Assembly: GCA_946965045.2 (NCBI GenBank)
Contig: OX337235.1
Span: forward strand, 558,001-622,000
Source: Epithemia pelagica
Taxonomy: Eukaryota > Protista > Bacillariophyta
Length of the DNA stretch: 64,000 bases
Direction of reading: 5' to 3'
Under the pieces are notes generated by a model. The model had not been told where the DNA came from and searched no databases. It saw only the letters and a list, made by a program, of their open reading frames with translations. The translations under genes were made by a program, and so were the position numbers. This document shows, in pieces, positions 1-50,046 of this stretch (positions are counted from its first letter, which is position 1; each line of letters starts with the position of its first letter).

Positions 1-3000
1 ATAGAAGTCGCTTGTCGATGTTTCGAACGATATGCCATCGCCCACTTCGTCAAACTTGAAGTTAGACTCGCCATATACACTTGGAATGTAGACAAACCGA
101 TCAATTCCATACTTGGCCAAAACCTCTCTCTCGTAGAGACCCATTGCAGCGATGGTGCCTGATACACCCAGAATCCGTTTCGGTGATATGTTTGCATAGG
201 AGAACTGTCCGCATGAAATTGTCATTGATAGAACCTGCGCAAGCGTCAAATCTACATCACGTAATTTTCCTTTATCGGCTTCTTGAAGGTACGCAAACAT
301 CGTACAATATCCGTACGTCACATCGTATTCATACGTATCCATGATCTTGTACCCAATCCGATTTGAAATGGGGTCAAGGCGGTAGCGCGGTTCGTCGTTC
401 ACTTTTTTGACTTGGCTCATCATCAACACAATCTCATTGTCGATGATATCAGTGAACCTGGGGTATTTTCTGATCAAGTTTCGATAAGGCCCAGTAGCCT
501 TGACGTCGGATAGCCGAAGCTGGCCGCCGACGCTTTTATGTTCAACCCAAATATATTGAAGAATTTCAGTAACTTCTGTATCTCGAAGCTTCGCACCTTG
601 GTTGTATGTCTGTCCGTAGAAGTCCGAGCCAAAGAACACATCAAGCTCGTCAACAAGCAAGATTTCTTCCTCCTCTGGTTGTTCTCGTCTCCTTCCCGTC
701 TGTACTAGTTCGCCTCGTAGCATACTTTCGGTCATCCGACGTATGTCACCTTTCGCGGAGATGGTTTCCTCAGAAAATGTTGTTATCTTGGAGTAGTTGA
801 TGCGATCCAATAACTTGAAGATTGCGAATAGATCTTTAAAGAGCTCATAGTCACGAGTCGAAAGATAATCACTGTAGCAAACGCAGCGGACTCGATAGCC
901 AAGTAGAGCAAGAACGGTAGCAGTCGCGCCTAGAATAAGCGATTTCCCTTCTCCCGTTCGCACCTGCATAGCCTGGCTTTCCAACGAGAAACTCGTGGGC
1001 TCACCACATCCCAGCATACACAACAGCGTGAAGACTTGGATGTTATGAGGCTTCATCAATATCTTATTTCCCAGTCTTTCGTCCTCGATGCGGTTATAGC
1101 TAGTGCCAGATTTCAGAACAGTGAATACTGCAAACACACCTGCAAGGATCATGGGTATTTTCTTTTTCACCTCTGGACGCCAGCCTCCGATACAGTTCAC
1201 CGGTTTGAGTTCATTCGACATTCTGGTAACAATTTCAACAAGCCCGCTAGTATCAGCGTCATGTGGCAAAAATGTAGCAAGAAAGTTTTTAAAGGTCTCC
1301 TCGACCGCGAAGAAATTTGATAAAAGTTCATTTGAGTCAACAGAGAAATTGGCTGCCATATTCTCGGTGCAAGGTTTCACCTGAATTTGACGCACTGTGT
1401 CCTCACACGGTTTCTGACATGTTTCTTCATTCCAAACCATCGTGATCACCTCCCTAAAGTGGCTGAATTCGCCTAAATTCATGTGGCAAATGCGATTTTC
1501 GTCATCACTTGCATCTTGATCACCACGCTGCAATGATAACCCTAGCTCGAACAAGAAACTAGGGCCCCATCCGTACTGGAGACATGACTCTAACGAAGTA
1601 GACATTGTCAATTTGGTCAGTTCTCGGAAGTGTTGGAGATCGTCCATAACGGATCCCAGTCGGACAAGGTTTCTTCGAAAACCGATAACTTTTTGGTTTC
1701 CATTTGGATATTTTGCCAGCACCTGATGCAAACAATCTCCCAGTGACTCAATGCCCGATTCAATTTTGCTCAAAATTCCGGTCGTCCATGATGTTGGGAA
1801 AATATCAGCATGTGATTTCAAGCTAGTTTCAATTTTCTTCAAATCGATGATACTGTCGTTCAAAGCTTTGTATTTATGTTCTGCCCAGTTTGTTTCGACA
1901 TCAACTCTCACCCCATCCACATATTCTTTTACCAATCTAACGACTGCGTCATAAGTGGATCTTGATTCGTAAAGTGGTTCAACAAGGTCATCCAGCAACC
2001 GCAGGTCATGTAGCTTGAAAAGAAGATCGTCAATAAGGTCGTATCGTTGATCTCGTAGATATTCCTGAGCTTGCTCTCGCAGGCGAGTTCCCACGCCTCG
2101 AACTTGACTATCAAAGGGCTCACATCTACGACTACAGCGGCGATATTCCGCTCTGAGTAAACGAGTCCCGGCTTCTTCTTTGTCTCCGAGTTTTGCAGCG
2201 TTGAAGTATGAACTATTTCCAGGAACACACCGACTTTCAGCAGCGCATTCAATCAATCGCTGTTGAGTGGCTTCAATCTCAGCTAAAGAAGCTGAAGGAA
2301 ACAACCCCAAAAAAAAACAATCTTGTACACGCGTGGGCTCGCGGCCACAGCTGAAGTGATCAAACCAAAGAGAGTTAATTTTTTTGAGCCATGTATCAAC
2401 CACAAGACAATCATCTCTTTTTATCTCCTCAGAAAGGAGCACGAATCTTTCCACGAAAAAACAGATTTTTGTCCTCACAAGTTCAACCTGTTCCTTTATC
2501 TCTCTGAAATCCGTGGAGTTCATAAATAGCTTTTCCAAGTACGAAATTTTGTCCCGTGCCTTCGAGAAAACCAACTCATGCACCTTTGTCATACTCGCTT
2601 TGCCTGCATCAGATCCAGCAATCCAAGGAAGTTTGCGCACAAAATCGAGGTAAACAGGGAAAAGCGGGTCAAAGTTGTGAACGTCTCCATCTCTCAACGT
2701 ATCTTGAGCTTCGTGGCACAAAAGCAAAAACGTTTCCCGAGCAAGTCGCTCTAAATTCTGTCTCTTAGCGGATGAGTCGGCAATGTGCTTTCCCACTTTG
2801 ATTTCAATGAGACGGAGTTGATCAAAACTCGCCCGGGCAACGGCGAGATTTGTCCTAGTCTTTAGCGCATTTTTGCCATCTTCGAAGAATCGAATAACCT
2901 TTCGTTGCAGTTTGTCGCCGAGCCTGTTGTATGATTTGTCCCTGCCAAAACCTATTACGCCTGTCCACCATTGCGGATGCAAGCGTTCCAGTCTGTCTGC

Positions 3001-6000
3001 CCAAGCATTGAGCTTCGTTTCAGCAGTTGAACCTTCGTACTCAAGGTAATTGTCTTGCTGGATTTTCATCGAAAGCCATTCGTCACGCTGTCGTGTTGGA
3101 TCAAACTGAAGAATAGATGACACAATATGATTTCGTAAGCCAGAATTCAATTGGTGGATCAAACAGTCCATCCAGGAAATGGCCTCATCGAAACAATGGT
3201 GTTCTTCCACAGTACTCAAAATCCTGGTGTGGAAATCGTTTATTTCTCGGGTGAGGAGGACAACGGCGTTAGAGTAGTGAGCGGCCAGCTCGTCCAGCCG
3301 TGGTGTTTGGCAGTCACGAGCTTCTTGCAAGTTGTTGAGTTTTTTTAATAACAAGCTGCCTTTTTGTAGACCCGACGCGACAAAGTCGTCTACACTCTGC
3401 ATGACAGAGGTAAGCGCATCATCGAACTTTGAAAAAGCCTTAGTTTTGTTTTCCATGACATCTTTTGCAATGCAGCGAACGATAGTGGGGTGTAACAACT
3501 CGGTGATGTCCGATTTAAATCTTCCCAGCAAGACAAAATTTGAACACTTTGCCGCTGAATTCATTTCCCTCAGTTTGTTCGCAAAGGTGCTCGTCAACTG
3601 GTTGTTCAGGTTGTCGAGGGATCTTCGCAAAGAATGCCCTAGTTCACGAAGAAATCCTTGGAGTTTTCTTAGAGCTAGATCAAGAACTTCGATGATCACA
3701 GCAATTTCTTCTACCGTGCTCCTTGTGATAGCACTAATGGCGATTTGTCGATGCGCTCTATTCGCGAGATTGAAGAGAGACTCCGAAATCAGTTTACGGA
3801 AGCGAGAGACCTGATTTCCTCGTCCATTGTTGACATATTGTTCCACCAAATTAATCATTCCGGTGTAATCTTCGGCTTGCACTAGACTACGTATATCGGC
3901 ACCAACTCCAGTTTGATTTTGCTGTTGAAGATCTCGGAACATGCGTAATTTTGCACTTGCCTTGTGGTCAATGAATCGATCAATAACTGTGGCGTTCTCA
4001 AACAAGTTGATCTGACTGTTCAATCCTTTCCAGTCAACGGGCTCTTTAGAAGAGAGCTTCTGAAGTTCAGCTGCATGGTTTTCAACAGCAACGAGGGCTT
4101 TACGCTTCAACTCGGTAAAATCGTAAATGCACGTCACCTGATGGCTTGCAAGCGTTTCAGCGGCAGCTAATGAGAACTCCTTGGCCCGATATCGGCCCTT
4201 GACTTCCATTACCGATCCTAGCTGATCCGCAAAATGAGAAACGGTTCCAAGAATCAAATTGTAGCTATGATGGAGTTTCTCCTTGCATTTTGAATGGAGA
4301 GACATGACATCTTTGATTTCACCAAAACGGATCTCGATTTGTCTCCCCGCATTACATAGCGAACCATGTAGCTCTGTAGTCATGCCACCACATTCGTTCG
4401 TGTCTAATTGCTTCTTCCACTCCTTCGAAACCTTTTGCCAGATGACAAGATCGTCGTTCCCTCGTTTCTCAATTTTTCCAGCGTACTCTAATAATTGCGA
4501 AACAACATGACCCTCCCATGCAGTGAGCTCGTCGTCAAAAGCAATAATCTGAGAAAGCTCTGGAAGTAACCAAGTCCGAAGCTGATTGATGGAGGAAGAA
4601 GAATTATTCGTGTCTTGAAGTAAATCCGTGAGATGGCTATTCAAAGACGTTGAAATCAAATCGATTCGTTGACGGTATATGCTCTTCATGGAATGAAGTG
4701 AGTCAATAACGGAACATGCTCCGGGTGAACCGAACTCATCAAACCATTCAACGTTAGAAACTGAGGAGACATACTCCGCGTCAAGACATCCATTTGTGAA
4801 CCCTTTAGCGAACGTTTCTTCGGCTCTTCTTCTTGACGCGTTAATCAATAAAGTTATTTCAGCCATGACAGCATCTATGACAGACTTATAGTTCGAACGT
4901 ATTCCTTTCCATTCATCTCCTTGCAGGTCAGCAAAAAGGTCAACACTGGCCCGGAGATCATAAACACGTTGTTTCATCGTAGAGTCGCGAACATTACATA
5001 TCTTTTTCATCGAATCTGCCTCTAGTGCAAACTGTTCAGTAACAATACCGGCAAGCTGATCAAGCTTAACTTCCAATGCATCAATAAAAAAGGAAATGCC
5101 TGATGTTCGTTCAGCTGATCCCTTAGGAACTCGAGAGGATGAGCCTTTTGTGAAAGTGAGAAAAGGTTTTGCTGCTGCAAGTTAACCGGTCTATCGAGAG
5201 ACGGGGAATCACGAAGTGCTTTCATTCTCCTGTTAGCTTTGGCTCTTGCTGTATTAATCAAATCGACTGGCACTTCATGCATGGAAAGGTAACTTGAACG
5301 GCCTGAAATCGTTTCAAGGAGAAAAATACCTCGAACATAGCTCTGAATACATTCGTGTGGGACCATTGCAAGCTTCTCTGGATCGAATTCAGAGACTTCA
5401 TTACATGTCTCTTCAATCATGGATATGAATTTTGTTCGCGATGCATAATATAGAGGCTCAAGCTGTTCAAAGCTTTCAGCCCATAAGCGTAAGTTATGAA
5501 GAACAACGTGAAAGTTGTCGTAGTCGTCTTCTTTGGCCGTCTGGTCGTGGAAAGCGTGGACTTCATGTAGGATGTGTCCCCATGATTGGTCAGCCCGTAT
5601 ATCCGCTGACGGAACGAATCTGCCACAATGCCTTCTTCAGACAGTCAATGTTTGAGGTTGCAAACTTCATATTCGTCGAGGTGACTCGGGATGTTTCAGT
5701 TTCAACAATCTTGCAAAGGCGACGAGCATACTGAGTGAACAACCTCTCCGATTCCGCCACTGCATGGTGAACCGATTCAATTTCGATGTTATTAGAAAAG
5801 AAACGAAGGATTTCAGAAATAGCCCGCATGTCATTAACTTTGAAGTGTACTGGGTCGTTCAACAAAACCTGCAGCTTGCGCACCATCGAATTTAGTTCTG
5901 ACTCAAACTTCATTGAAAGATGCTGTGGCAGAACGCAAGTTCTTGAGGTAAACTTGTCTTCAAATGGTTTCATATTTTCTATTGTTAACCGAAGTTGAGC

Positions 6001-8586
6001 AAAATCCGTCTCCGTAGGATGGAGAATATCGACAATATGGTAGCGACGTTTGTTCGGATCGGTTTTACGCTTTCTCAAACATTTCACCATGTGGTCGACG
6101 ATAGTCGCCACATCACGATCATTCCTGCTAGTGCCGTTCAGGATCTGAACTAATTCTTCCAAGAGGAAATCTCGTGCATCTTGAATTTCTTCCGGAAATT
6201 TCTTAATCTGGTTGGTATGAGTGAAAAAGAAAGCGAAGCTTGCTTTATGGGACGAAAAATCTTGGACAAAGCTCCTTGTTAATCTGAGAACGGCTCTCAT
6301 CGAACCTCCTCGGTCCTCGAGCAACGACGTGTAGTTGATCAAAATTACAAACCGCAAACTTTTGCACCTTTTGACCACATGGTTTTTCATAACGGACGTG
6401 GCAACATCGACCTCCTGGCCACTCGTATCTTCAAACCCCGGGGAGTCAACAAAAGCAATCTGTGTATTCTTCGTTGTCGTTGATGTCAGGTACGCACGAA
6501 GGCATTTCGTTACTGACTCTTTACTGTGACCAATTTCAAACCCCGTCATCTCATCCTCAGCCTCGAACACGTCTTTCCCCACTGTCTGGCCCACATTAGT
6601 GATAGTCTTTCTCGTTAACTGACGGAGAGAAATACCGTTGATGAAGGTTGATTTGCCGCTCCCAGTCTTTCCCACAACCAAGACCACATCCCTGTTTGAA
6701 ACTTGTTCAAGGGCGGGTAGTCCGTTCTCGATGCATTCTCGCAAAAGTCCCATGTCGAAAGGCATCGAAATCGTGTATGTACCCAAGTCCCAACCATGTG
6801 GAATTCCACAATTACTTGATTCTGATTCGCTATCGGACCATCCGTCCTCAAGACTTCCCTCGTGCTCTCCGTGCACAGTGACTTCTATCTCCTCTATGAT
6901 AGATACTTCGTTCCCAGGTTGGGATGTTGGCGTTGAAGTTAACGGAATCACCTCCGTGTGAACACCGGTGACAGGAGCTTCTTGCACCGGATCCCCAGCT
7001 ACGCCGGAACTTTTGGGAAACACTGCATCCATGTTGACCAATCCATTCGGCGTTGACACCTCCCCCGCTTCAGCGAGAGCAACATTGAGGTTGCCGGGCT
7101 CCAAATGTCCGTCATCGCCGTTGTGATAAACAATATCTCGCTTCGACGTGAGAGCGTGCTGGTCTTCCGCACCTTTGTGCTGGACTTTTTGGGGATCAAA
7201 AACTACCGGTTTTTCCTGGGTAACCCACGCCCAACTCAGAGATTCAGGCTCAGCTGCAGCTTCGACGGCCGGTAAGACCACAGACGAATTGGGGCTGCTT
7301 TTAACAGCCTGGATTTTCCCATGTCCTCCAACATCAACATTACAAGACTGTTCATGACCAATCCTCAAGCCTTGGATTTCAGTTCCAGTTCCATCCGTAG
7401 CCTCAATCTCTTGCAAACCTTCCAATACAATCTCAGAGCGGGTGGATGACACGGCTTTTTCAGTCTCCTCGGATTGCTTCTCGGTACTAGTCCCGTCGTT
7501 ACTCACGCGTTCTGTCGCTTTTGTCAAACAGGCCAGATGGTCTTTGTGTGCCATCGCTCCACCACGAGCTTCGTGTTCGATTGCATCGGCAGTCGCTGGA
7601 GGCGGAACTTGATCGATGTTCGTCGAATCGGGCATTCCAAGTGAGTGCGCTTCAGTCATCGATTTTTCTTGATGCTTACCGGCATTCTCCGCACCGGCAA
7701 GACAAGTCCCTCCTACTGTTTTGTTCATCAGTGCTTCCTTTTTAGATTTCTCATTCGACCAGGGCTCCTCCAACGTCATCGGGTTTGTACCAAGTTCACC
7801 GGGAGTACCATCGTCGTTATCATGGTTCCAAACTTGAGGAGCCGGCTGCAACCCATCCTGTTCAGAGCAAAAGGTTTCCTTCGGCATGAGGACAACACTA
7901 CCCTCTACAGTCTCAATATGGTTTGGATCTCCGTGAGCCCAATCTTCACCATCCAGTTCCTTGCGGTACCCGGAATCAACAACCAAAACTTCCTCCTTTT
8001 CCTGGATAAAACCAGTCTTGGGTACATTCACAGTGCTGACGCCAACTTGATCCACATCCATTGCTAGCACTGTCTGGCAAAGATGCCCGTTTTCAACAAG
8101 CACTTTTGCTGGAGTGGGCGAATCAATCTCCATCTGCACGGGGTGCTTCCATGCCGGACCCTTGGCCGTTTTCTTCGGGATCTCCTTCTGGTCACCCTCC
8201 ATCACATCGTTGCCAAGAGGCGCTTCCTTCAATCCAACCTTGTTCCACGACAACAACTCATGCCCCTCGCAACCATCACCACCACCAAGTCCAGCATCAC
8301 CATCAGATGCCTTGGCACCAGACATTTCCATCGTTTCCCAATCATTACCATCCGAACGGATCGGGGGTTTTGATTGGCCCACAATGGACTTACAATCAAC
8401 TGTTTCCAACACACCTTTTCCACCGTCTTTCTCCTCTACTTTCATCGTCACATCACCGCCAACCGTCGTAGCCGTGTCCTCCGTACTGGACAAGTCGTCA
8501 TCGTCGAGGCCGACATGGAGGAACGAGTTCTTCAACTTCATGATACGAGGATGCGTCGAATGTACTTTGCATATCTCTTCACACAC
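1..8586 (-). pseudogene. Paralog A of the giant GTPase / SecA-like ATPase family; frameshifted (pseudogene or assembly indels); runs off the left edge
   Basis: The 998-aa ORF 8586-5590 has G1 VGKTGSGKST, DSPG and THTN. After a +1 shift near 5600 the frame HEVHAFHDQT...MIEETCNEV...AHPLEFLRDQLNEHQAFP aligns with paralog C. After a -1 shift at the A6 run (5086-5091) the original frame resumes. Spot translations in that frame give QVRTGEGKS (about 940-965) and FKFDEVGDGISFETSTSDFY (1-60). No stop-terminated minus-strand ORF is listed in that frame, which is consistent with it running off the edge. Confidence 0.85.
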
Positions 8587-9893
8587 AAGAGGGACTCAAT
8601 CTTAGTTTGTTTTTGACACACACAAACAAGATTTTGTGGCAGCCTGAACGCGAGACACACACTCTTTTTTGCCCGAACCCCAAAAGATCCAAAAGATCTT
8701 TTGGCTTCCACAGCCAATCAACATCCATGGAATTCTGACAGCTGTCCGAAATGGTACAGACCGTTCCTTGCATTCGCAAAATGTTTTAACAAGGTGCCTT
8801 ATTCGTCAAACTGGTACACAGTTCCTTGGATTTTTTCGCCACATTTTATAACGGTATCTCATTGGCCCAACCGGGGAATCCATCTCACGGGAAAATCCGT
8901 GAACTGGCAGTCGCCGATTTTTCGCGCCGTTGTTCATCGATCATCTGCAGCCGGAAGCACACCACTTGCCGTTTCCGGTCTATGTGTCAGTCGAAATTCC
9001 GTTCAAGATTTTAACGAGGCTTCTTATTGGTCCATCCGAGTAGGTCACTGGAAAACCCTGCTCAGTTTCTTTTTTCGCAAACGACAACACCAGTGACCTC
9101 AAGGTAGTGGATCGGGACCACGAGAGAGATTCAGTGGACGACTTCCCAGAAACGCTCAGTCGACCCACTTCCCAGAATCGAAAGGTAAACCGCGAGAGTG
9201 CATCGCTGCTTCATTCAAACTGTTCTCGAAAACGAAAGATTCCAAGAGACAGAGATCATGATCAACCATCGGGTTGTTCTTTTGGGGACAACTGTGGTCT
9301 TTCTCTTGTTGTAACGAGAACACCACACATTGTCAGCGAAACAGACGGCTGAAAGTTCATGGTGCATCAACCACACACACGACATGCAAAACCACACACG
9401 AATGTCATCTCTGCAGAGCGCCGTGCGGAGGAGAGGGTGTGCGTGCTCGGTAGGGCATGCGCGCGACCGGCCCGACTGCGCCTGGAATGCGGGTACCCGC
9501 AAGAGTAAGAGCGGGGCTACCGTCTGCACGTCGCCACACCAAACGAATAACGACCCCTTTTTCGTTGATGTAGCAGACATAGCGGAGCTTTCCCCTATTT
9601 TAAGTCGTTTCTACTCCTAGAGAGTTTCTTCAGTTATTTTACGACAACACTAATGATAGATTGCTTCAGTCCAATCGGCCCAAAGCCAAATGGTAGAATG
9701 TCAAACCGTCACTCGACGAAGGCGACCGAGAGCGAAAGAGGGCATGACTCACAATGTCAATCAAGAGGACAATCCAATACTCTGCTCCGTCGCAAGATGT
9801 GGTGCGCCGAGGTCGGTATGAAGGAAAACCACTATGCATCATCTAGACTTTTATTGGACTGAGCTACGCACAACGTTGAATTGAAATACAGAG

Positions 9894-12800
9894 TTACATG
9901 AATTCCAGGGCAAGTTTGTTGCCAACGGCCTCGGAGACTCGTTTTCCGATTTCGGCCTCGAGGAGCCCAGCCACATTTGCACCACCCGCGATCTCTTGAA
10001 AAACTTTCGCAAGGTCGGACGTATCCGTACTTGCCTTAACCTTACCAATCGGTGAAGCAGCGGCTATTTGTCCGAGCTGAGATTGGTCAGCATAGGGGCT
10101 GAATGCAATCACATGCAGCTCAAGATCACTGCCAGTAAGTGCCTTGATATCATTGTTCAAATCAGAGAAATGCGATGCCGCTTGCGGAGCATCGTTTGCG
10201 CAACCATCGCTCATGAAGACAATAACAGGAACATGCGTCGATGGAGAAGCCTTAGCCACATTGTAGGCACTCAGTGCAGCTGGACTGAAGTTCGTTCCGC
10301 CATCATGATAGTAGAGATCTTTCGGCGCCGATCCGATGGGGCTTAGGCTCACCGTGACTTCGGCTTCATGTGAAAACTGGACAACAGACACAAGGTCGGA
10401 CTCGCACTGATACTGCTGGCGGCGCGCGATGTACTGATTGTATGCGATCACAACTCCAGACCAGTCATCGTACATAGAACCTGACTGGTCAAGAACGAAA
10501 ATGATGTGTCGATCGTAGTTCACCGATGGATCATGAGCACCTGGATGTTTGGAAGTAGGTACGAGAGGGATAGTCGTCACCTCACGTTGGTCCTTATTAC
10601 GGGGATGATCTCGGTATGTCTGGGATAATTCCTGCTCTGTCTTCAACGTGGACGCAGGGTTGAATGAACACATGAACAAATCAATCCCCTTGGAAACAAG
10701 TCCATCAACAACACTATCAACCGTCAATCCAAGAGGATGCCGTGAAGAATAGTTGTCTGAATTCTGACCACTCGCAAAACCTGGATCCGTCAAACCATGT
10801 GCCGCGGCGTCCGTGAGAACCATTATGAACTTGAGTCTTGAGGCCCAGTCTCCCGGGCCGCTCCAATGCGCACACCGATCAAGAGCTCCTAGAATATCTT
10901 CCGCCAAGTCGCCACCACCTGAAGAATGTTTAGTATTACGTTCCACAAAACGAATTGCCTCGTCGGCGCTGTCGGTGAAATGGCTCTTTGAGTGCCATGT
11001 ACTTTCTGTGAATTGCTTCGCCTCGTCATCTATGTCGCGAAAAGCCATAACTGCAGTACGGAATGTAAACTCCGTGTCAGGGTAGTTGGCCTGGAGACGC
11101 CCCATGACTGCTCCCCGCTTGTCAATCAGTGTGTGGATAGTCGCCGCAATGGCAGACTTGTACGGCCCCATGCTTCCGGTGACATCAATCAAAAACGCGA
11201 TGTCAATATCAGTGTTTGCAGCGAGTGCCTGTGTTTTCATTGAAAAATATAACTCTTTGAATAAGTCCTGTGCTTTCCGCGAGTCACCTTGGATGAGAGC
11301 GTCAAAGTACAGGTTTGTGTTCTGGTCTTTCTCGGTGGCGTCTTGGAGATTCACGTCCATCACATGACAATGACTTTCATGTTTCTTCGCACGGGCACTG
11401 GAAAGCCATTCATACATATCCTTTTTGGCAACAGTGTCTTTCGCGCCAATCTCAACGCCAAAATGAGTTTTCAGGTCAGATTCAAGCAATACCATTTGAT
11501 AGGATCCTTCCTTTCCTTGTCGAGATGTTCGTCCTCGGATCTGGAGTTCCTCGCTTAGAGCTTCCGACAAAAACGCTTGGACAACGTGCACGCCACCATT
11601 CTTATGCACCACATCGTCCTTGCAAAAGAAATCAGTGCCTCGACCAAACGAGGCCGTGCACAACGTGGTCTGACCAGCCGTCGCAGCTTTCTTGACAACA
11701 AACTCTTTGTCATTCGCACTCATATCCTCTGTCAGCAATCGAACTTGACGACGATCAAACTTCTTGAAGAACGAACTTCGTTTGTATTCTTGTAAGCGCA
11801 AATTATCATGAAAGAACACGATCGCAGCCCTCCTTTGTTTCGTCACATCGAGAATGACATCCGTGATTTTGTGAAAGAAGTCGCTAACAGATGGTTCCAC
11901 GAATATTCCATCTCCAGCCTTATCAAAATCGAAATTGGACTTCCCATAGACACTCGGAACGTAAATAAACCGTTCAATCCCATATTTCGCCAAAACATCG
12001 TGTTCATATTGACCCATTGCCGCAACGGTTCCAGAGACACCTAGAATTCGAAGCGGGCTGATACTTGCATAGGAAAACTGACCACATGACACGGGCATTG
12101 CAAGAACATTCGCCAGTCTTGTCTCGGCATTCTGCAGTTTTCCCTTGTCGGCCTCCTTGAGGTATGCAAACATCGTGCAGTATCCATAAGTAACATCGTA
12201 CTCGATTGTATCCATAACTTTGTACCCAATTCTCCCTGTCACTTCGTCAAGGTGGTATGGTTCCTCGTCAACCCTTTTAACTTGGTCAATCATCAACAAA
12301 ATTTCGTTATCGAAAAGATAAGTAAAGTCAGGATACTTTTTCACAAGATGCTGGTATGACTCGATGCCTTGTATATCCGCAAGTTTCAGTTTCTGTCCTA
12401 CTCGCTTGCTGTTGGTCCAAATGAACCTGAGTATCTCAGCGATTTCGTCTTCTTGCAACTGATAAACCTGATTATATGTTTGTCCGTAAAAGTCGGAGCC
12501 AAAGAAAACATCAAATTCATCCACAACCAAAATCTCCTCGTCAAGCCTGCCCTGCTCATTCTTTCCAGTCTTGCAGCCTCTTGAAGACAAACTTCCCTTC
12601 AATAGACTTTCTGTCAAGTTGCGGATGTCGCCTTTTGTTCTCGTACAATCTTCCGAAAGTTTCGTAATCTTGGAGTAAGTTATTCTATCGGCCAACTGGA
12701 AATACCCAAACAAATCCTTGAATAACTCAAAGTCACGATTTGAAAGATACTCGCTGTAGCAAACGCAGCGAACGCGGAAACCAAAAAGCGCCAGTACAAC

Positions 12801-21004: not shown

Positions 21005-21100
21005 CACTCCTGCAGGATCCAATTCACCGCAAAATCCACATTCCAGGTTGAAGAAATTCCCAAAGATCCATTTCCGGAATTCCGGTCCTGTGAACGAAGA

Positions 21101-21260
21101 GGGAGAGAATAGCAACAAGAGGAGAACCAATCGGTGCAGTGAGACAGAAATGCAGACACGACATTATTTTTTAGTCTCTCTCTCTCTCAATTGGTTGATG
21201 GGGGAGAGGATAGCAATCAAAGAACCACAATCGGTGCAGTGAGACAAAAACGCAGACATG
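21101..21260 (+). repeat. Imperfect direct repeat with 100-bp spacing
   Basis: CAATCGGTGCAGTGAGACA(G/A)AAA(T/C)GCAGACA starts at 21128 and at 21228; both are preceded by GAGAG(A/G)ATAGCAA. Confidence 0.8.
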
Positions 21261-22165: not shown

Positions 22166-22185
22166 CACACACACACACACACACA
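22166..22185 (+). repeat. (CA)10 microsatellite
   Basis: Read directly from the sequence. Confidence 0.95.
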
Positions 22186-28200: not shown

Positions 28201-29197
28201 AATACAAGGCCACATTCAGGGCCGTAGTAGTATTCGTGCAGGACTACGATCGAGCCTTGGCATTGTGGTGGTTGGATTTGCTGCTGCTCCGACAACGACA
28301 ACTCTTCGGCAGCATTCCACAAATGGCGGCAATGTGGACCGTTGGGCAGCATCGTCGGCCGTTGAGGACATGAACGATGACATGTTGTTGCGTTTGGTGT
28401 TCGGCTACTAGCAGTCGTCCTGGAGAAATATCTCGTGTACGTCCCTGCGTAAAAGAGGGATCGAATTAGATGCAAGTTATACAAAGAAAATAGAATACAA
28501 TGTAGGACATGACTTTGCTGCTTACCATTGCTCCAGACAAGCAAAAATGGCCTCTGTTTCGTCGTTTGCTCGTTGATTGTTGTGTGCCAACGTGCCAAAC
28601 AGAGCTGTTTTTGAGTGGTAAGCTATCTAAAGCTGCACTTCCCCCTGCACACCCACCACTCCACATCGCTTTTAATACTACTAAAGAATAACAGGAAGCA
28701 TTATCAGGGTGTGAGAGAGCGAAATAGACAAATAGCGACGTAAATGGTGCAGCACAAGCAAAATGGTAAAAAAACACAGAGCATCTCAGATGAACGACTT
28801 CATCTCTACCGCCCCTTCGATTTTTCGCACGAAACTCACACGACCTGTCTGCTGTCTGGATATGATGAACGGCGGCATCAAATGCGGAGCGTCATGGTGA
28901 GGTGGTGATTTTAAAATTTATAACTTTAACCCTAGTGAAACAGGATGGGGTCGTGTTCAAGTCGCTTCTCCTGAAGTGTGCGCGCGCAGGCACGCCTCCT
29001 TCACGCATGACCGGGCAGCGAGACGACTCTTTTTTTCTCGCCTTTCACTCCAAATCCCGAGGTATCTTTTTCTCGCCATACAGCCAAAAAAAAACACGGA
29101 ATCGCTAGTTCAGTTGTTGGGCCAACGCAAGCCAAAGACGATTGATTGAGAAACCAAAAGCACCTGTTGAACCATTACATCAGTGGTGGTGTGGTGT

Positions 29198-32100
29198 ATG
29201 AAATCGTTCCTGGATAAGGAGGCGTCGACTGTCCCAATCGCGGAGAACGGGCCAAAGATGCTGCCCAACTCCAAAGATGCTGCCAACGACACAAAGAAGG
29301 AGGAAGATCCAAGTTTGCACCAAAACCCGACCTCAATTCCTTACAAAAGCATGGAACCCAAGGACAAGACAACATCATCATCTGATCCAACTGTTAAGGT
29401 AACTCCCAAGATTGCCAAGGAATGGGCGGTCGTCCAAACGCAAGAAGACAAAATGAGTGACGAGGAATTCCTCGATGTGCTGTCCGACTTTGATGAAGAG
29501 CCTGAAACGGAAGACTCCAACTCGACCTCACGGTTTCTGGATGCCAAGCAGGACGAGAACCAAGACAGTACCAACAAAACAGATTCCAGAATCCAGACAA
29601 GGTCCGAAGACAACAAGGGTAGAGAGGCTCCCCCGATGGATTCGGAAATGGTTCATAGGGTTGTAGTGGACTTGACGAAGGCCGAGAATCGCTCCAACGT
29701 CCCTCAAGACCCTCCAGGGCATGGTTCAAAGACCACCTCGAAGCTTCTCGAGAGAACCAAAGAGTGAGAAGCCATCCCAAGCAAAGTGTCAGAAGCAAAC
29801 AACGAGAACCGTGGGACTGTTGTGACAGCAGGAACTGCTCGCTCGCAAGGCAAGGAGGGCAATGCACGTGTGCTACAAGAGGATGGTTCCCACCGGGTGC
29901 GGCTTTGGAACAATAAGGATTCGACGGAGGACAGTACTACACGCAAACGTTCTTGTACAGAACTGCAAACAACGCAAAAAGACGAATCCAGCAAGAACCC
30001 TCCTCGAGAAACCAGTGTATCCTTGCAGCAGGCAAAACCGATTCAACGAGAAGCAGGGGCTACGACTGTGTCGTTGAGTGAACAACAAGGCACCTTGTCT
30101 GACGTCAACAACAACAAGACTGTTATTCAAAATGGGTCGGATGAGGAGGATGGCAACCGGAAGCGGGCCAGAGTACAGCTTGAGGTGGATGTTTATGAAG
30201 CTATAACCCACAAGCCCGAGAATGAGCATCCTCATTCTACTGTAGAAGGAGAGGACGACCACGAATCGTACGATGCATGGTCGGAGAGCGATGCCGGGTC
30301 GGTCAGCATGCTGATAGAAGATGCAGTTACCAACAATGGTCCTCCTCAGCGCAAGTTGGACATGAAGTGTTTGCAGGAATGTATCAAGAATGGCGAGGCA
30401 GCTCTGGAGCAAGTGAATGGTATGGATGTCGTTCTCATCATGGGCAAGACAGGTGCTGGAAAGACTACGTTGATTAACGGAATTGCCCGAAAGGAATTGA
30501 AAGAAACAGTCATCCAAGAGACAAGTACCGGAGTAACAGTGGAGAAAAATGTTTTTATGGCCACGCAGGAGCTTCCCGGCTTTGAGATTGGACATGCCAA
30601 ACAGTCCATGACCAAATGCCTTCGATGCTTTGCCCCAGAACTTGAAGTTTCGTCGTCCAAGAAGAAGAGTAGAGTTGTATACGTCGACTCTCCCGGGTTT
30701 GAAGACACGGATGGCCCCGAAGTCGACATTGCCACATCGGTGATGATCAATCAAGTGGTCAAACGATCCAAAAGTCTTCGATTTGTCATTTTGATCAATT
30801 ACGCCTCATTGCTCGAAGACCGCGGAGGTTCGATGCGGGCGGTCCTCAAGCTCATTCATGTGTTTGTTGATGATTTCAAGGCCCACAAGACGAGTTTCAC
30901 GTTTCTTTTTACGCATATAAATGAGATCAAGGATGTCTCAGAAGACCTGGCTGGTGCACGAGAATGTCTCTTAAAGGAGTTGATTCGAACCAGAATGGGT
31001 ACCAATGCATCCGACACAGATGTCGTGCAAATTCTTGACCACATGATCGACTACCTAATGAAGCGCAAACATGATCCCAAAAAAACTAAATACCAAATTG
31101 TGGACATTTTGCATCCCATTCAGTCAGATTTTGCAAATTTGAAGACGATCGTTGAAGAAAGCAAGCCAGTAACAAAGAAGTTTGTCGCAGGAAACTGTGG
31201 TCTCTCACCTCAGCTGAAACTGAAACTCGGCGCTGGTCTGGAGAGTATGTTGCAGCATCTGCGTGTTCTGTTGAACAATGATTCATCGCTTGCAGAGGCC
31301 AAGGAGGCCAAGGAGGTTTGTGATTATATGCTTTATTTAATGCGCTTTATGGACATTGAAGTGGTCCGTAGCAACGTCACAGCCTGTTCTTCCCTGGCTC
31401 AAAAGTACGCAAAACACTTGTGTGATGTCGTGGAAACGGAAACGCGACGAGGCACGTCGGTACAAGTCAAGTTTGGCCGCTCTAATGTGGAATCGCTCAA
31501 GAATGCTCTGGGACAAGTGGAACTGTTGGACAGCTTTTGCGAAGAAGGAAAACGTTTCAAGGAGGTCAATGCTTTTGTAGACTGTAAAGTTCGAGATTTT
31601 CATCAAGAGGCCATGTGTGGATTTGGGTGCGACAACTTGCACATTGTGCTTGCTCATTTACGTTGCTGGGCTGACGGCTTTGGACAGTTTCAGACTCTCT
31701 ACCAGAGTGCCCATAGCCATTTCGTCCAGCTGCTCGAAGGAGGGTGCAAATACATTAGTGGCTTCGACCTGGATGGATTTGCTTCTGTATCACAAGACAG
31801 TTTGGAGACCTTTGTGGAAACGCTCCGCGATATCGAGCTCGTGTGCAAACTTGTGGGCCATGCTGCGGAACATGAGATTGACGTTACCGTGCCGCGTCGG
31901 GTCGTTGTCAAGGTGAGGCAAGCAATGTTAAAGGCAGTCCAAACAAAGGCGTCACTTCCAACAAGTGTATGCCCAGAACAACTGGCGGACGTAGCTCGAG
32001 TTGCACGGTCCTTAGAATTGTTTCAGGAGTTGGCGAAACGCCACCTCGTCTTTCCGTCGTTTGATGAAGCATTATCAAGCCACATCCGTAAATTGGGTCA

Positions 32101-35100
32101 AGAGGTGACCACGTGCTTCTCGGAAATATATGAGAAAGCCGAAACGGCAAGTCAGAATTTTGATTCAGGTTGGAATCAAGCTCTCACTAAACTTCAGTAT
32201 CAGGTTGGTTGCTTTGATGGTCTTCAATCGCCTTGCTGGGGTCCTGTAAGGGCTGGATTTGCTTCCATCATACGCAAGCTTGAATCTGTTTTGGAAGAAC
32301 GGATGCGTATTGTCGAAGTTAGAGCGAAAGATGTTTTACAGCATGGGTTTCGAGACGGGGCCGAAGAGAGAATCGCGATCGATCATCTGGCTGGGTTTGA
32401 GTGGTTTGACGAATTCCTACATGCCGACCACAAATTTGTGGCTCTTTCACTGAGGGGAATTCAGAAAAGCTACCAGGAGAGAATTGACTTTGTTTTGCAA
32501 GAGATCAAAAAGTACATTTCAGACCTACTTAGCGATAACCGAGAACGACATTCCAAGCTATGTTTGCAAGATTATGTAAGGGAAATTCATGAGATTGGGA
32601 TTTTTGATACTGGTGTTGCCCCCATGGTATCTGAAGCATTTTCCAGACTACAACAGCACATCCAATTGAAAGAAAAACAGGCTGATGAGCTTTTGATAGC
32701 CTGGGGGAAAGCGGTTTCGGAATGGAAGAAGCATCTTAACAAACCCGTCGTTGACGATACCAAAATGGATGATGAACCTCAACAGAAACTTTATGAAGCG
32801 GGAAGGCAAGTTGATGATATTTTGGGCAAGATGGAAATGCTTGCTGACATGCATCAATGCTCAACAGATGGTACGCTGAGTAAGCTTACAGCGAATATTC
32901 GTCAATGCTTTCATCAATTTGAGGAGGATAGTCAAGAGATAGTCAAGTGCCAAGGAAGGTATTTCGCCAAGCACCGTATTATATGTGCTTTGCACGAATT
33001 CGCTAATTTATCTCACATTCCTATCAAGGGAACCGAAACGATGAAAGTTGAAGCAAAAGCTGGAATAAAGCAACATGCAATTTCAATCAAACAAATGATA
33101 TCGGATGGATCAGATCCACCAAAGATCGAAAGAGAGCTAAAAGAGTTGAGAAAGTCTGTATCAATTGACCATTTCACTGGAAACGAAGGTACATCCTGTC
33201 TTCATGTCATTCAAAATATCCAAGAGGAAGAGGGCGAAGAGTTGGAAAGCGAAATACGAAACCTGATTGAACACCGAGAGTACTCACGCGTCATCGATCT
33301 CCTGAAGCCCTACAAAAACTGCCGAACTACTCATACCAACAAGTGTCGTACAATTGTTTCCACAAATTTGCTCCGTATTCTTCATGAATCTTTCTCGGAA
33401 CTCTCGGCTCGTAATATGAGCGGAGATGGTCTCGATACCGTCGCAGAAAACATAGCTGTCCTTAAGCGATTTTTGGACGGGCTTGGAGACTTTACTGTAG
33501 ATTGCAGACTTTCCTTACCGCGAGATATACGAAAACTCAAGACGAAGATCAATTCTTGCCTGTGCTTGATATGCTCAGATATGAAAGAGTCAGCGAAACG
33601 GCCAGACTTTGTCAGCCTCGGTACAGGAAAAATTGCTGTAAAAGCATTCTCGTCATCCAAGATTCATGTCTACATTTCGAAAGCAACTAGATCCCAAATG
33701 AACAATGCATTGGCTGCTTTCAAGGAAGCAGTTGATTCCGTTTCACGTCATCTGGAGAATTTCGTTTCGTCTGGCTTGACAGAAGGCTCTTTGTTAGTTG
33801 GTGATCTAATTAGTTTGCGCGAGGCCCGTGATCACGATTCCCAAACTCTGGAGGAACTCTCGACGATCTATACATCGATACAAAAAGATCTTATCAAGCA
33901 ATTGAACGAGAAGTACAGGACTATATCAATGGCGGTTGAACGCCATATGTGTTTCGAAGAAGCCATAGCGTGGATGAGAGCACTTGGGCGACAGATGGAC
34001 TTTGGTTTGCGCGACCATCTACGAACCAAGGACCTTGTTTTTGACATCAGCGCACAGGTGGATCGTTGGCGTTCGCAGAAGACTGATTACGAGAAGGACT
34101 TGGAGTTTGAAGGAATTGACGCCGACATTAAGCTGGACAAATGGTCTCATTCCCTCGCTAGTTTGGATCCAAAGTCAAAGTGGTGGTTCCCCGGGTTCCT
34201 GCGGTCTGGGCGAGACAGTTCCTATTGGCGCCTTTGTTATACGCTTGAAACCAAGATAGAACGAGTTTTTATGTCTGGAAAAGCGGCACTATTAAGGAAC
34301 AAAGATCTTGAAACGGCACAGGAGAAGATATCAATGTTGGACTTAATCAGCAAGAAGCTGGGTAAGAATGTCTCGAAATCTATTGTAGCTCGAGACGAAT
34401 TGAAGAAAATTGCATTGGATTCGTTTCTTTGCCTTTGCCGTGATGCCCAACATGCATTGGAGGTCGGAGGACTAAGTCATCAGTTCCAGCGGCTCTTCCC
34501 TGACTATCGAAATTTTGTTATCCATGTTCCGGTAGCAATGCTTTCAGATTCCGGAAAGAATGCTTTCTCTTCGACAAATCAAAAAATATACGAAGAACTT
34601 GATAAAAAGATTGCTGAGTTGGAAAGCTTATTAGAGTCATTTGACTTCCGGAAAATTAAGGAATCGGTTGAGCATCTGCGGTCGGATGGGGGCTTCATTG
34701 CAGATAGGTTCACACTGCTGCATGAGGAAGTGGAATGTTCCGAGCATGCGAATGTTGATCGGTGGTTAGAAAAGATTCAGTCCCTTTCCATGGCTCACTT
34801 TTGCCGTGGTCGCCGTCTTGACCAGATAAAGCATTTCGCCGTCCTCGGGTTGCCTCCTTCGGCTTCTCTGACGGACATCATCCAGACAAAGGAAACAATG
34901 GATGGACAACTAAAAAGAAAGGGTGGCTACAAGAATGACAGCGAGTTGAGAGCGAAGTTACGAAAAGTTGAGATTGCTTATTTGGAGTTGACCAAATATG
35001 AGAGCATGGACATTGAGAATGTTGCACAACCTTTTGATGATGTAGTCTCTTCTCTTGGAGATCGCCTGCGAAAGCGAACGAGAGAGTTGCTACAACAACA

Positions 35101-38100
35101 GAAATATCATCAGGTCGAGCAGTTGCTGTTTAAACTGGATGGTCTGCATTTATTGGATGATCTAGTCAGTCCTCCGATGGAGTCAAACAAGACTTTACAA
35201 GCGGTAAGCCAATTGGTTAAACAGCACGTAGACGGGGTGAGGGTTGATGTAAATACGAACTGGTCAGAACGAAAATACAAGTCCGTCAATGAGAATATTG
35301 CTGATCTGAAACAAATGGAGGCGAGTTTCAAGTCTTACCATGATATTTTTCCAACATCATGGAACACCGGAGTATTACGTGCTATCGAATCCGAGATTGA
35401 GTCGCTGGGCGCTCGGGCACGTGGCTTTCTGGAATCGAAAGTTACAGCGTACCAGAAGTTAGATGACTTTCGTCGATGCTTTGTACGGATGGGGTATGTC
35501 CTAGATGAATTGGTTTGGTTCAAAGATATCACGAAATCGACGATGTATTCAGTCCTGGAGGCTTGTTTGAATGCTGATTGGGGCCACGGGTTCTTATTTG
35601 AACTTGGGCTTAGTCTACAACGAGGTGACGCAAATGCAGATGATGACGAGAATCGCATTTGTCAAATGATCGTTGCAGAGTTTAGTCATTTCAAGGAGGT
35701 TCAGACTATGGTGTGGAATGAAGAGACATGCCAGAAGCCTGCCGATGATACAGTTCATGATATACGAGGAGAGCAACGAAGTAGCTCAGGCACGAAAGAG
35801 TTGGACATTGATAAGCACGAGCTGTTGAAGAAATTTTGGTCCTTTGAAGAGAAGTACAAGCTGTATTTGGCTGAATATCTGAATCCAGATGCAGATATAA
35901 ATGAGCTTGTACAAACAGTGGTTAGAGCAGCGACAAGTTTACAACCTATCAAATGTGCTGGTGGATGGACAACGGAGGTGAAAGAACGTCTTCCGTCGGT
36001 AGTGGCAGGTGTTTTTGCTGTATTTACGGTCCTCAAATCTTCTGCAACGTATAATCGAATTGGCAATGACGAACTAGGAGAAAAAATTCTCATGAAACCA
36101 CATAACATCCAAGTCTTGACGATTCTGTCCATGTTTGGATGTGGTGATTTGACAAGCTCTAATCTTGAGAACCAAGTCATGCAGATCCGCACGGGTGAGG
36201 GAAAATCTCTGATTCTTGGTGCCTCGGCTGTTGTACTGGCGCTTTTTGGTTTCCGCGTTCGTTGCGTATGCTACAGCGAGTATCTTTCAAATCGCGACTA
36301 CGAGTTATTCAAGGATTTGTTTGGATGTTTCCAGTTGACAGATAAAATCACGTACTCCAAGATCACGACACTTTCCGAAGATTGCACAAGAGCAAAAGGG
36401 GACATCCGCAAGTTGACCGGTGGCCTATTAAGAGGTTCTCTCGCCCATGATGGTACCGCGATTCGGACGACAGGACAAGGCGGCCTTGACGAGGAGATTT
36501 TGGTTGTGGATGAATTTGATGTATTCTTTGGCTCCGACTTTTATGGCCAAACATATAATCAGGTTTACCAGTTGCAAGAAGACGAAATTGCTGAGATACT
36601 TAAATTCATTTGGGCGAACAACATGCGAGGAGGACCAAAACTGAAACTTGCGGATGTACAAAGTATCGAGCCATACCGTCACCTTGTGCAGAAGTATCCT
36701 GACTTTGCTTATGTATTCGACAACGAAATTTTGTTGATGATTGATCAAGTGAAGAGAGTCGACGAGGAACCATACCATCTTGACGAAGTTACGGGACGCA
36801 TCGGGTACAAAGTAATGGATACAATCGAGTACGATGTTACTTATGGATACTGTACGATGTTTGCATACCTCAAGGAAGCCGAAAAGGGAAAACTGCAGAA
36901 TGCCGAGACAAGACTGGCGAATGTTCTTGCAATGCCCGTGTCATGTGGACAGTTTTCGTATGCCGGTATCAGTCCACTTCGAATTCTAGGTGTTTCTGGA
37001 ACAGTGGAGGCAATGGGTCAATACGAACACGATGTTCTGGCGAAGTATGGAATTGAAAGGTTTATCTACGTTCCGAGTGTCTATGGTCCATCCAATTTCA
37101 AATTTGACATGGCTGGAGATGGTATATTCGTGGAACCATCGGTTAGCGATTTCTTTCACAAAATCACGGATGTCATTCTCGATGTGACGAAGCAAAGGAG
37201 GGCTGCGATCGTGTTCTTTCATGATAACTTGCGCTTACAAGAATACAAACAAAGTTCATTCTTCAAGAGGCTTGGTCGTCGTCAAATTCGATTGCTGACA
37301 GAGGATATGAGCGCTGATGATAAAGGTTTTGTTGTGAAAAAAGCTGCGACGGCTGGTCAGATAACATTGTGTACAGCGTCGTTTGGTCGAGGAACAGATT
37401 TCTTTTGCAAGGATGATGTTGTGCAAAAGAATGGCGGTGTCCACGTCATCCAAGCTTTTTTGTCGGAGGAACTCAGTGAGGAGGTTCAAATCAGAGGCCG
37501 AACAGCTAGGCAGGGGAAGCAAGGATCTTATCAGATGGTATTGCTTGAATCTGACCTCGAGACTCACTTTGATATCGAGCGAGGTGCAAAAGACAAAGTT
37601 CCAAAAAAGGATAGATATGAATGGCTTTCTAATGCCCGCCGAAAGAAGCATCAAAGTCATTGCCATGTGATGGACGTCAATCTCGAGGGTGCCACCGAAA
37701 AGGATAAGAACACAAATCTTTACTTTGATTCTCTTCTACAGGGTAACGCGCGGAGGGCACAGGACTTGTTCAAAGAGTTGTACTTTTCAATGAAAACCCA
37801 GGCATTGGCTGCAAACACGGAAATTGACATTGCGTTTCTGATTGATGTCACTGGAAGCATGGGGCCTTACAGTTCTGCGATTGCGGCCACTATCCGAACA
37901 CTGATTGACAAGCAGGGAGTAGTCATGGGACGCCTCAAAGCTAACTACCCAGACACGGAGTTCACCTTCCGCACCGCAGTGATGGCTTTTAGGGACATTG
38001 ATGACAAGGCGAAACAATTCACTGAGAGTGTATGGCAATCAAAGAGTCGTTTCACAGACGTTGCCGATGAAGCAATTCGTTTTGTCGAACGTGAAACTAA

Positions 38101-39133
38101 ACAGTCATCTGGTGGTGGTGATTTGGCCGAAGATATTCTAGGAGCTCTTGATCGCTCTGCAGAATGGAAGGGCCCAGGAGCTTGGACTTCAAGACTTAAG
38201 TTCATGATGGTTCTCACAGATGCGGCTGCACATGGGTTGGCCAATCCGGCAGTAGCAGGTGGTCCAAACGGAGACCACTATTCTTCACGGCATCCTCTTG
38301 GTTTGACCGCTCATAGTGTGATGGGTAAACTTGTTTCCAAGGGGATTGATCTGTTCATGTGTTCGTTCAACCCAATGGCAACATTGAAGACTGAAGAGGA
38401 ACTTTCCCAGACGTATCTCAACCACCCTAGCAATAAGGATCAACGTGAAGTGACAACTATCCCCCTAGTACCTACTTCCAAACAGTCAGGTGCTCACGAT
38501 CCAGTGAGCTACAATCGACACATTGTTTTTGTGCTGGATGAGTCAGGATCAATGTACAATGACTGGTCGGGGGTAGTGGTTGCTTACAATCAATACATTT
38601 CACGTCGCCGGCAGTACCAGTGCGACTCAGATCTCGTGTCGGTTGTCCAGTTTTCTAGTCAATCAAGAATCACAATTCAGCAGCAGAAAATCCAAGAGGC
38701 TCCGAAGTCCTTGCACTATCACAATGGTGGAACTCAGTTCAGTCCAGCTGCTCAGAATGCCTGTGCCTTGGCAAGGGGTACTCCGTCGACGCATGTACCA
38801 GTCATTGTCTTTATGAGTGATGGTTGCGCAGACGATGCTTCACAAGCAGCATCGTATTTTTCTTCACTTAATAATTACATCAAGGGACACACCGGCAGTG
38901 ATCTTGAGCTTCATGTAATTGCCTTCGGGTTGAATGCAAGTCAGGCTCAACTCAGTCAAATTGCCGCCGCGTCGCCGATTGGCAAGGTTCGCGCCAGTAC
39001 CGACACGGCGGACTTGTCCAAAGTCTTTGAAGAGATTGCGGGTGGTGCGAATGTGGCTGGACTCCTCGAGGCCGAGATTGGAAAACGAGTTTCGGAGGCC
39101 GTGGGCAACAAACTTGCCCTCGAATTCATGTAA
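29198..39133 (+). CDS. Paralog C of the giant GTPase / SecA-like / 2x vWA family (3311 codons including one in-frame TGA at 29765-29767)
   Basis: ORFs 29183-29767 and 29786-39133 are in the same frame, separated only by GAG TGA GAA; first ATG at 29198. Same motif set as B: IMGKTGAGKT, DSPG, QIRTGEGKS, VDEFD, GRGTDF, QIRGRTARQG, DVTGS, DESGS. Identical C-terminus LLEAEIGKRVSEAVGNKLALEFM. Confidence 0.9.
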
Positions 39134-50038: not shown

Positions 50039-50046
50039 GGTCGACG

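Follow-up and report, generated by a model that had tools for sequence, protein, structure and literature searches.

Tandem giant genes joining a GTPase, a SecA-like motor and two vWA domains in the diatom Epithemia pelagica, a candidate protein-remodelling family

A 64,000-nucleotide (nt) stretch of the genome of the diatom Epithemia pelagica (assembly GCA_946965045.2, contig OX337235.1, forward-strand positions 558,001 to 622,000; called the window here, with positions counted from its first letter) carries three paralogous genes for giant proteins whose parts follow one another in a single order: an acidic disordered head, a P-loop GTPase, about 1,250 amino acids (aa) of helices, a J-like segment, a SecA-like motor and two vWA domains. 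Together with a further copy just past the right edge, they make up a cluster of four tandem paralogs, of which one is intact, one has a segregating null allele and two are pseudogenes. The family to which they belong is large, old and undescribed as far as our literature search reached, and its members may best be read as nucleotide-gated machines for the remodelling or extraction of other proteins, a reading to which we give a probability of about one half.

The copies are named A, B, C and D. Those in the window (A, B and C) were detected by tblastn of the B protein, and Pfam agreed with the shared order of parts that the original prediction, made from the letters of this stretch, had described for three paralogs. 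Three do lie in the window; the cluster runs on beyond it, however, as A(−) B(−) C(+) D(+) over about 85 kb. The list of open reading frames (ORFs) gives 3,602 aa for B (9894-20702, −), 3,115 aa for C (29786-39133, +) and 998 aa for copy A (5590-8586). In tblastn, C is 63.6% identical to B over B residues 633-3602, and A is 42-43% identical over B 635-2943, split into pieces. All catalytic motifs are retained in A, B and C, the DNA similarity between B and C stops at the stop codons, and a protein identical to B is present in a public collection (P0001).

Table 1. Features of the window (B residues refer to the 3,602-aa protein).
Feature	Positions	Strand	Description	Basis
Paralog A	1-8541	−	pseudogene, leaves window at left edge	tblastn pieces
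Paralog B	9894-20702	−	intact 3,602-aa ORF, intronless	Pfam
B vWA2, residues 3393-3602	9897-10526	−	canonical; MIDAS DQSGSM; PF00092	
B vWA1, residues 3160-3392	10527-11225	−	divergent; MIDAS-like DVTGSM	
B SecA-like motor, residues 2490-3150	11253-13235	−	NBD1, PPXD-site insertion, NBD2, long scaffold-type helix	
B conserved helical linker, residues 2236-2489	13236-13997	−	80% B-C identity	
B J-like segment, residues 2150-2235	13998-14255	−	J domain without HPD	
B helical region, residues 901-2149	14256-18002	−	alpha-solenoid-like array	AF2 model
B GTPase, residues 690-900	18003-18635	−	G1 GKTGAGKT, G3 DAPG, G4-like FTHLNE	Pfam, AF2 model
B head, residues 1-689	18636-20702	−	acidic, low-complexity, specific to this copy	
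MYND-finger gene	23462-25267	+	between B and C, outside the family	Pfam
Paralog C	29198-39133	+	frame of about 3,311 codons, broken in the assembly by a single TGA	tblastn, Pfam
C stop codon	29765-29767	+	TGA in window; allelic	run contigs
Copia-type retrotransposon	44744-50038		gag_pre-integrase + SH3_retrovirus + RVT_2	Pfam
piggyBac-like transposase ORF	60463-61587		DDE_Tnp_1_7	Pfam

For the motor, SecA and SecA2 are the best match in both sequence and fold. Its motifs read TGEGKS (Walker A), DEFD (Walker B), FGRGTD and RGRTSRQG, in line with the TGEGKS, DExD, FGRGTD and RGRTxRQG of the two-lobed, DEAD-like SecA motor, and Pfam places SecA_DEAD (PF07517, 41 bits against a cutoff of 24.6) ahead of P-loop_SecA/Helicase_C. 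A phmmer search of the PDB returned SecA only (4e-10), with TGEGK and RGRTSRQG aligned. When an AlphaFold2 (AF2) model of B 1960-3150 (pLDDT 88, pTM 0.72) was compared with the PDB by Foldseek, the top 36 matches were all SecA or SecA2 (E 3e-16 to 4e-9), and helicases, namely DinG, RIG-I, MDA5 and LGP2, ranked lower (E 3e-6 to 5e-5). In a VIA comparison, substrate-engaged SecA gave a Z of 27 with 541 residues aligned (model residues 534-1191, chain residues 14-727), against 384 residues for an isolated DEAD motor and a Z of at most 18 with about 330 residues aligned for DEAD-box helicases. The model further places an insertion of about 140 residues after Walker B, where SecA has its preprotein-binding domain (PPXD), and a 45-residue helix of scaffold type after the second nucleotide-binding domain (NBD2).

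The motor is thus SecA-like, yet the protein is not a SecA translocase, as the original prediction had also held. Identity to SecA is only 15-18%, and the motor of the family is embedded in a soluble protein of 3,600 aa together with a GTPase, a helical arm, a J-like segment and vWA domains. Against the NCBIfam SecA and SecA2 equivalog models, the best score was 60.7 bits with a cutoff of 862, and the others reached 30-49 bits with cutoffs of 725-1,493. Pfam found no match in the protein to PF01043 (preprotein cross-linking), to PF07516 (wing/scaffold) or to SEC-C, and B has no membrane or plastid targeting signal; among the proteins of the cluster no signal peptide, transmembrane (TM) segment or hydrophobic segment was found.

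The GTPase motifs that had been quoted from the sequence (GKTGxGK, D[AS]PG and TH[TLI]N) are present in A, B and C as GKTGxGK[ST], D[AS]PG and FTHxN. Like GIMAP/AIG1, Toc and septin-type members of the TRAFAC class, the domain is a P-loop G domain with G1 and G3 boxes, and a G4-like box, hhFTHx[DN]E, replaces NKxD; across the family the box is [FL]F[TS]Hx[DN]E. At this box (B 856-861, about 18120-18137), A, B and C have FTHxN and about half of the family has FTHxD. Pfam matches on the GTPase are of the MMR_HSR1/AIG1 type, with B and C matching only MMR_HSR1 and generic P-loop models; PF04548 (AIG1) is absent from their matches and stays below its cutoff in copy A (E 1.2e-5, 25.2 bits against 27). 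The AF2 model of the region in B (pLDDT 84) has the form of a TRAFAC G domain, for which VIA gave Z scores of 12.0 for EngB, 11.9 for GIMAP7 (184 residues aligned), 11.8 each for GIMAP4, FeoB and Rab27a, and 10.3 for Toc33. Since EngB, FeoB and Rab match as well as GIMAP does, the model places the domain in TRAFAC but singles out neither AIG1/GIMAP nor another subfamily, and classification through short homologs returned only fragments of the same family. A STAND NTPase module (NACHT, NB-ARC) was not found, the lone nSTAND3 match being of P-loop length (E 0.0078, 16.4 bits against a cutoff of 27.2).

On either side of the GTPase lie the parts that differ most among the copies. The head of B has an isoelectric point (pI) of 4.46 and 19.7% aspartate plus glutamate (D+E), values close to those of the paralog heads in general (pI about 4.5, D+E 18-20%), and phmmer found no homolog of it among 107 relatives. 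The helical arm is modelled by AF2 as entirely helical (pLDDT 84), and its first half (B 1060-1600) is the fastest-evolving folded part of the protein. No specific relative of the arm was found; the structural searches returned only non-specific solenoids at a TM score of about 0.1 and ESM Atlas feature scores of 0.72.

The J-like segment had been claimed for B and C, and it is real and present in A as well. The family consensus of this segment is that of a J domain, PF00226 matches in relatives, and 52 of 68 relatives retain HPD; the motif has been lost in one whole clade and is absent from A, B, C and their E. clementina relatives. The last 60 residues of the linker that follows align with a bacterial giant protein. 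Of the two predicted vWA domains, the C-terminal one is clear-cut (PF00092, 52.7 bits against a cutoff of 23.8), and the upstream one is divergent but supported by its MIDAS-like DVTGSM and by VWA_4, which matches 15 of 18 family members (best E 4.7e-6); in a profile comparison with the PDB it comes closest to the integrin beta I-like domain (E 0.036). An internal duplication as the source of the pair was tried with hhalign and gave no significant match.

The original prediction had described one intact copy, one with an in-frame stop and one that is frameshifted. B is indeed intact, but the other two cases proved less simple. The frame of C upstream of the listed ORF is open back to the ATG at 29198, and contigs assembled from four public sequencing runs on this organism (X1 to X4) were aligned to 28400-32400. 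In these Logan contigs, which record the presence of a sequence and not its allele frequency, position 29767 is C (TGC, Cys) in X1, X2 and X3 and A in X4, which comes from the same sample as X3; the X1 contig over 28903-31084 differs from the window in that letter only. Since X1, X2 and X3 read TGC, the stop is allelic or, with lower probability, an error, and C also occurs in an intact form. Run X2 appears to be RNA, given its total of 39 Mb, its nil intergenic depth and a GT..AG joint at 28443-28525 (−), and an unspliced 2,285-nt contig from it covers 29447-31732 in C. Copy C is therefore transcribed at low depth, and its stop is not removed by an intron; in-frame GT..AG pairs that could define such an intron are many, but the RNA-like contig is unspliced there.

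Several smaller observations belong to C and its upstream flank. The same X2 contig (depth 9 there) is without one letter at 30098, in the head region, an absence that none of the DNA runs shows and that might stem from an error, from a difference between strains or from another defective allele of C. Upstream, X2 skips 81 nt at 28443-28525, the CT..AC ends of which are GT..AG on the minus strand, where an ORF lies at 28062-28598; the skip points to a gene on that strand, a short way upstream of C, that is spliced and well expressed. The segment 28534-28935 is a high-copy repeat, with a word depth in the DNA runs of 1,600-4,900 against about 190 in the flanks (10-25 fold), and many run contigs end within it.

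Copy A was followed past the left edge on two ENA contig ends (L001 and L002), which are 99.965% identical over 11.3 kb. The window holds its acidic head, GTPase (G1 near 6700), helical region, J-like segment and the first part of its motor (about 1-1350). What remains of the motor, together with the two vWA domains, reaches about 1,975 nt left of the window, where the vWA part had been expected; the vWA domains are 59.8% identical to B 3215-3602. Two stretches of its main frame are open, 8598 to 5592 and 5184 to 1, with a middle piece of 27% identity in another frame. In all there are three frame changes, one close to 5600, one around 5110-5180 and one some 810 nt beyond the left edge (L001 15883-15889), the third falling exactly at the B 3213/3215 junction. 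Introns were rejected as the cause; the alignment of the protein runs through each site uninterrupted and no additional DNA is present, so that the breaks are indels. Homopolymer errors were rejected too, as the sites are not homopolymer runs, the second contig has the same sequence there, and X1 and X2 contain all of the 31-mers sampled from 4800-8600 (a fraction of 1.00 in each). No stop occurs inside its four homologous pieces and every catalytic motif is kept. Together these findings point to recent inactivation, and copy A is a pseudogene that appears to be transcribed. The fourth copy, D, begins 1,828 nt right of the window end and was followed as far as B residue 1593. It is 56% identical to B 640-1147, shifts frame near B 1140 and resumes at B 1526, and it is split by a Copia-type element of about 9.7 kb, a young insertion, with 734-base-pair (bp) long terminal repeats (LTRs) that are 99.73% identical.

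Conservation is spread very unevenly along these proteins. Identity between B and C, taken domain by domain, is 86-90% in the motor, 80% in the linker, 76-83% in the vWA domains and 72% in the GTPase, and falls to 52% in the second half of the helical arm and 32% in its first half; the B-C tree path is 0.19 for the motor and 1.65 for the first half of the arm, a ninefold range. A per-domain test of dN/dS, which the original prediction had proposed, was possible in part (NG86 method): the ratio is 0.08-0.29 wherever measurable, which excludes the helical arm, with 0.12-0.16 for the motor (0.12 at dS 0.65) and 0.14-0.15 for the vWA domains, and dS is saturated (above 1.9) in the 5' half, compared with 0.5-0.65 in the 3' half. 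Purifying selection on the motor, vWA and GTPase domains is strong. The lower dS in the 3' half of B and C may reflect gene conversion. In E. clementina, the vWA parts of two paralogs (P0002 and P0005) are near identical (branches of 0.008 and 0.005), but in the GTPase and helical parts the two lie well apart (0.07 against 0.38 and more), a contrast that suggests 3'-end gene conversion between paralogs.

In the per-domain trees, B and C are sisters throughout and group with A and four proteins of the E. clementina type in a clade that has full support, and each species, E. pelagica and Epithemia clementina, has its own recent duplicates. A mosaic origin of B and C, suspected from the 32% identity of the helical arm, which is below that to E. 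clementina, is not supported by these trees. The birth-and-death evolution that had been proposed for the family is supported for the cluster, because intact, null-allele and pseudogene copies stand in tandem and because duplications have arisen independently in E. clementina. That the genes are mobile-element cargo was rejected, as they are without bounding repeats, the homology of B and C ends at the stop codons, and orthologous clades extend across species.

The narrow family implied by the original prediction did not hold up, and the core architecture extends across several eukaryotic groups and into bacteria. A search limited to proteins of similar length to B gave the 107 full-length relatives, from many diatoms (Epithemia clementina, at 71% identity, Pseudo-nitzschia, Cylindrotheca, Thalassiosira, Seminavis, Nitzschia and Skeletonema), the green alga Cymbomonas, the foraminifer Reticulomyxa and several protist transcriptomes. 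All are unnamed, hypothetical or mislabelled, some as SecA or "chloroplast protein-transporting ATPase". They fall into two subtypes, with and without vWA, which are often adjacent on one contig, and some carry fused kinase or U-box domains. A profile of the linker and motor brought in 1,304 clusters at 50% identity with E of 1e-30 or below, the 150th best at 1e-161, and members as distant as 19% identity still have the GTPase, helical arm and motor, often with vWA and in one case with a U-box.

In a scan of prokaryotic genomes, 17 loci with ORFs of 2,000-2,950 aa were found in metagenome-assembled genomes (MAGs) labelled as Gammaproteobacteria, Legionellaceae, Chlamydiae, Rickettsiaceae, Wolbachia and Actinomycetota. 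On four such contigs (L012, L004, L006 and L010), single ORFs of 1,992-2,954 aa encode a GTPase and a SecA-like motor, and the bacterial ORFs adjoin ordinary bacterial genes, such as GGDEF/EAL and aconitase. One of them aligns with B at 26% identity over 245 aa in the GTPase (E 1e-15) and 35% over 663 aa in the linker and motor (E 1e-106). These giants of intracellular-type bacteria share with the diatom proteins the GTPase, the linker with its motor and a size of the same order, but differ in that no vWA or J domain was detected in them. In an unrooted motor tree their rows are polyphyletic, nested among the eukaryotic ones in at least three separate places. A comparative Legionella paper lists a "SecA DEAD-like" gene (of the lfa2470 type, Legionella fallonii) among those acquired from eukaryotes (PMC4256840), a survey names GIMAP-type and SecA-like domains among Amoebophilus effectors (PMC3482391), and the sole mention of a "SecA-like ATPase" that was found concerns secreted toxins of actinobacteria (PMC8195603). 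A full-text literature search, with most subscription journals beyond its reach, found no functional description of the fused architecture, in keeping with the original prediction.

Among eukaryotic proteins, the animal SecA_DEAD-domain proteins of rotifers, Daphnia and fish also have a SecA-like motor outside the plastid and gave the top ESM Atlas shape match; they differ in forming a separate clade (support 100) and in their ankyrin or endonuclease architectures, and they match B weakly, in the motor motifs only (E 8e-8 to 5e-4). A likeness of another kind is found in midasin/Rea1, MoxR-vWA, CbbQ-CbbO and VWA8-type systems, in which, within one giant protein or a pair, an NTP-driven motor is joined through a long helical linker and an acidic disordered stretch to a MIDAS vWA domain at the C-terminus, onto which the client docks. 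That likeness is one of design only, with no sequence or fold relationship detected; the motor here has two RecA lobes of SecA type in place of an AAA+ ring, with a GTPase and a J domain added, and Pfam finds no AAA+ family beyond matches of P-loop length.

On this analogy and the domain content, a remodelling or extraction machine could work as follows. The MIDAS sites of the vWA domains and the variable helical arm would bind a client protein or complex, the GTPase would serve as a switch for assembly or licensing, and the SecA-like motor would spend ATP to grip, pull or unfold the polypeptide; in the members that keep HPD, the J domain would pass the client to Hsp70, a link that the copies here would have lost. 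Several points weigh against this scheme. Its mechanism is built from domain logic and analogy, PF01043 and PF07516 went undetected by Pfam in the motor, and a polypeptide clamp is proposed only because an insertion of comparable size occupies the site of the SecA domain and because the alignment to full SecA is longer than to the bare motor. Since it stands within the helicase superfamily, the motor may have a nucleic acid as its substrate, the GTPase as modelled is assigned no further than TRAFAC, and the absence of HPD from A, B and C makes the Hsp70 link inapplicable to them. Finally, dN/dS is below 0.3 wherever it is measurable, and the fast helical arm may owe its divergence to relaxed constraint rather than adaptive change.

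It is possible, though we lean against it, that the proteins are sensors and effectors of cell-autonomous immunity, in which head and arm would recognise pathogen molecules and GTPase-driven oligomerisation would activate the motor and vWA domains against a virus, parasite or bacterium. The tandem cluster with its pseudogenes and segregating null allele, the lineage-specific duplications in two sister species, a helical arm that changes ninefold faster than the motor, GIMAP7 and GIMAP4 ranking with the closest structures to the G domain, relatives with fused kinase or U-box domains, and the recurrence in intracellular-type bacteria, alongside the eukaryote-derived Legionella gene (PMC4256840) and the Amoebophilus effector domains (PMC3482391), all speak for it. 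PADLOC, however, matched no defence system, only mad8 at E 0.007 through the P-loop alone, and Pfam found no STAND, TIR, death-fold or nuclease effector domain. The dN/dS values below 0.3, a GTPase inseparable from housekeeping GTPases of the EngB type, and the conservation of the architecture in distantly related eukaryotes, uncommon among immune receptors that cycle fast, tell in the same direction. That an ancient housekeeping machine is at work, for the assembly or disassembly of large complexes, organelle biogenesis or trafficking, with the extra copies here being redundant duplicates decaying neutrally, seems unlikely. It would account for a core shared by diatoms, a green alga, a foraminifer and other protists, for the strong purifying selection on the motor, vWA and GTPase, for the resemblance in general terms to midasin/Rea1 and for EMP70 and SET nearby, but sits badly with a high and variable copy number, two subtypes per species, a local cluster in which three of four copies are dispensable, the very fast divergence of head and arm, and the loss of HPD in one whole clade. 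The turnover of the family speaks more for surveillance or conflict than for one housekeeping task, and its conservation across several eukaryotic groups and bacteria fits an old cellular function as well as an immune one.

Two further accounts concern the motor itself. It is improbable that the SecA-like part is a nucleic-acid helicase or translocase, as in sensors of the RIG-I/MDA5 type; two RecA-like domains of the helicase superfamily, weak Pfam matches to DEAD and Helicase_C and the presence of DinG, RIG-I, MDA5 and LGP2 in the Foldseek list would suit such a role, but SecA is far ahead in every comparison (E 1e-16 against 1e-6, with the Z scores and aligned lengths given above), the context of TGEGKS and RGRTxRQG is specific to SecA, and the J and vWA partners point to protein clients. 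That the gene is a true SecA translocase (plastid or bacterial), attached to a host gene through mis-assembly or fusion, or a bacterial contaminant, has in its favour the automatic annotations of some relatives, and it is refuted: all curated SecA cutoffs are missed by a wide distance (30-61 bits), signal peptide and TM segments are lacking, the wing domain and SEC-C tail are undetected, and the gene lies between eukaryotic genes and retrotransposons, with a DNA contig and an RNA-like contig spanning it. A bolder extension, which we regard as rather doubtful, would join the remodelling machine to defence: the family might be a new arm of protist cell-autonomous immunity, consisting of GTPase-gated giants whose cytosolic SecA-type motor unfolds pathogen or pathogen-modified proteins docked by the MIDAS vWA domains and the diversifying arm, with bacteria of the Legionella, Chlamydia, Rickettsia and Wolbachia types repeatedly capturing the host gene to interfere.

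As to the surroundings, the transposons of the original prediction are there (Copia-type and piggyBac-like), but ordinary genes are as well (EMP70, SET and MYND finger by Pfam), and its effector-like neighbours come down to weak kinase-like matches. The genes in question, at 55679-57436 and 57748-59526, stand in tandem and have in common a 1,757-nt block of 99.4% identity, a very recent duplication, and both have weak APH/ABC1 kinase-like matches near residues 450-490. In the ENA (assembly ERZ21939226), the left end of the stretch (1-30700) sits at the end of ctg1311l, and the copy A region is repeated at the start of ctg1297l with the 99.965% identity over 11.3 kb noted above; for the right part (47800-64000), one gene was looked up and found only on ctg1336l. 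The A/B region is thus assembled twice there, and the right part of the window may belong to another contig.

SecA is familiar as the motor that drives protein export in bacteria and plastids, and a SecA-type motor within soluble protist proteins of some 3,000 aa would be a new use for it, in a family of 1,304 clusters whose annotation goes no further than "hypothetical" or a mistaken SecA label. Fast turnover in diatoms and recurrence in intracellular bacteria make the family a candidate for a part in conflict between algal hosts and microbes, at a time when algal innate immunity is almost unknown. If a housekeeping role proved true instead, the family would represent a new class of protein-remodelling machine, one that could be tested in tractable diatoms.

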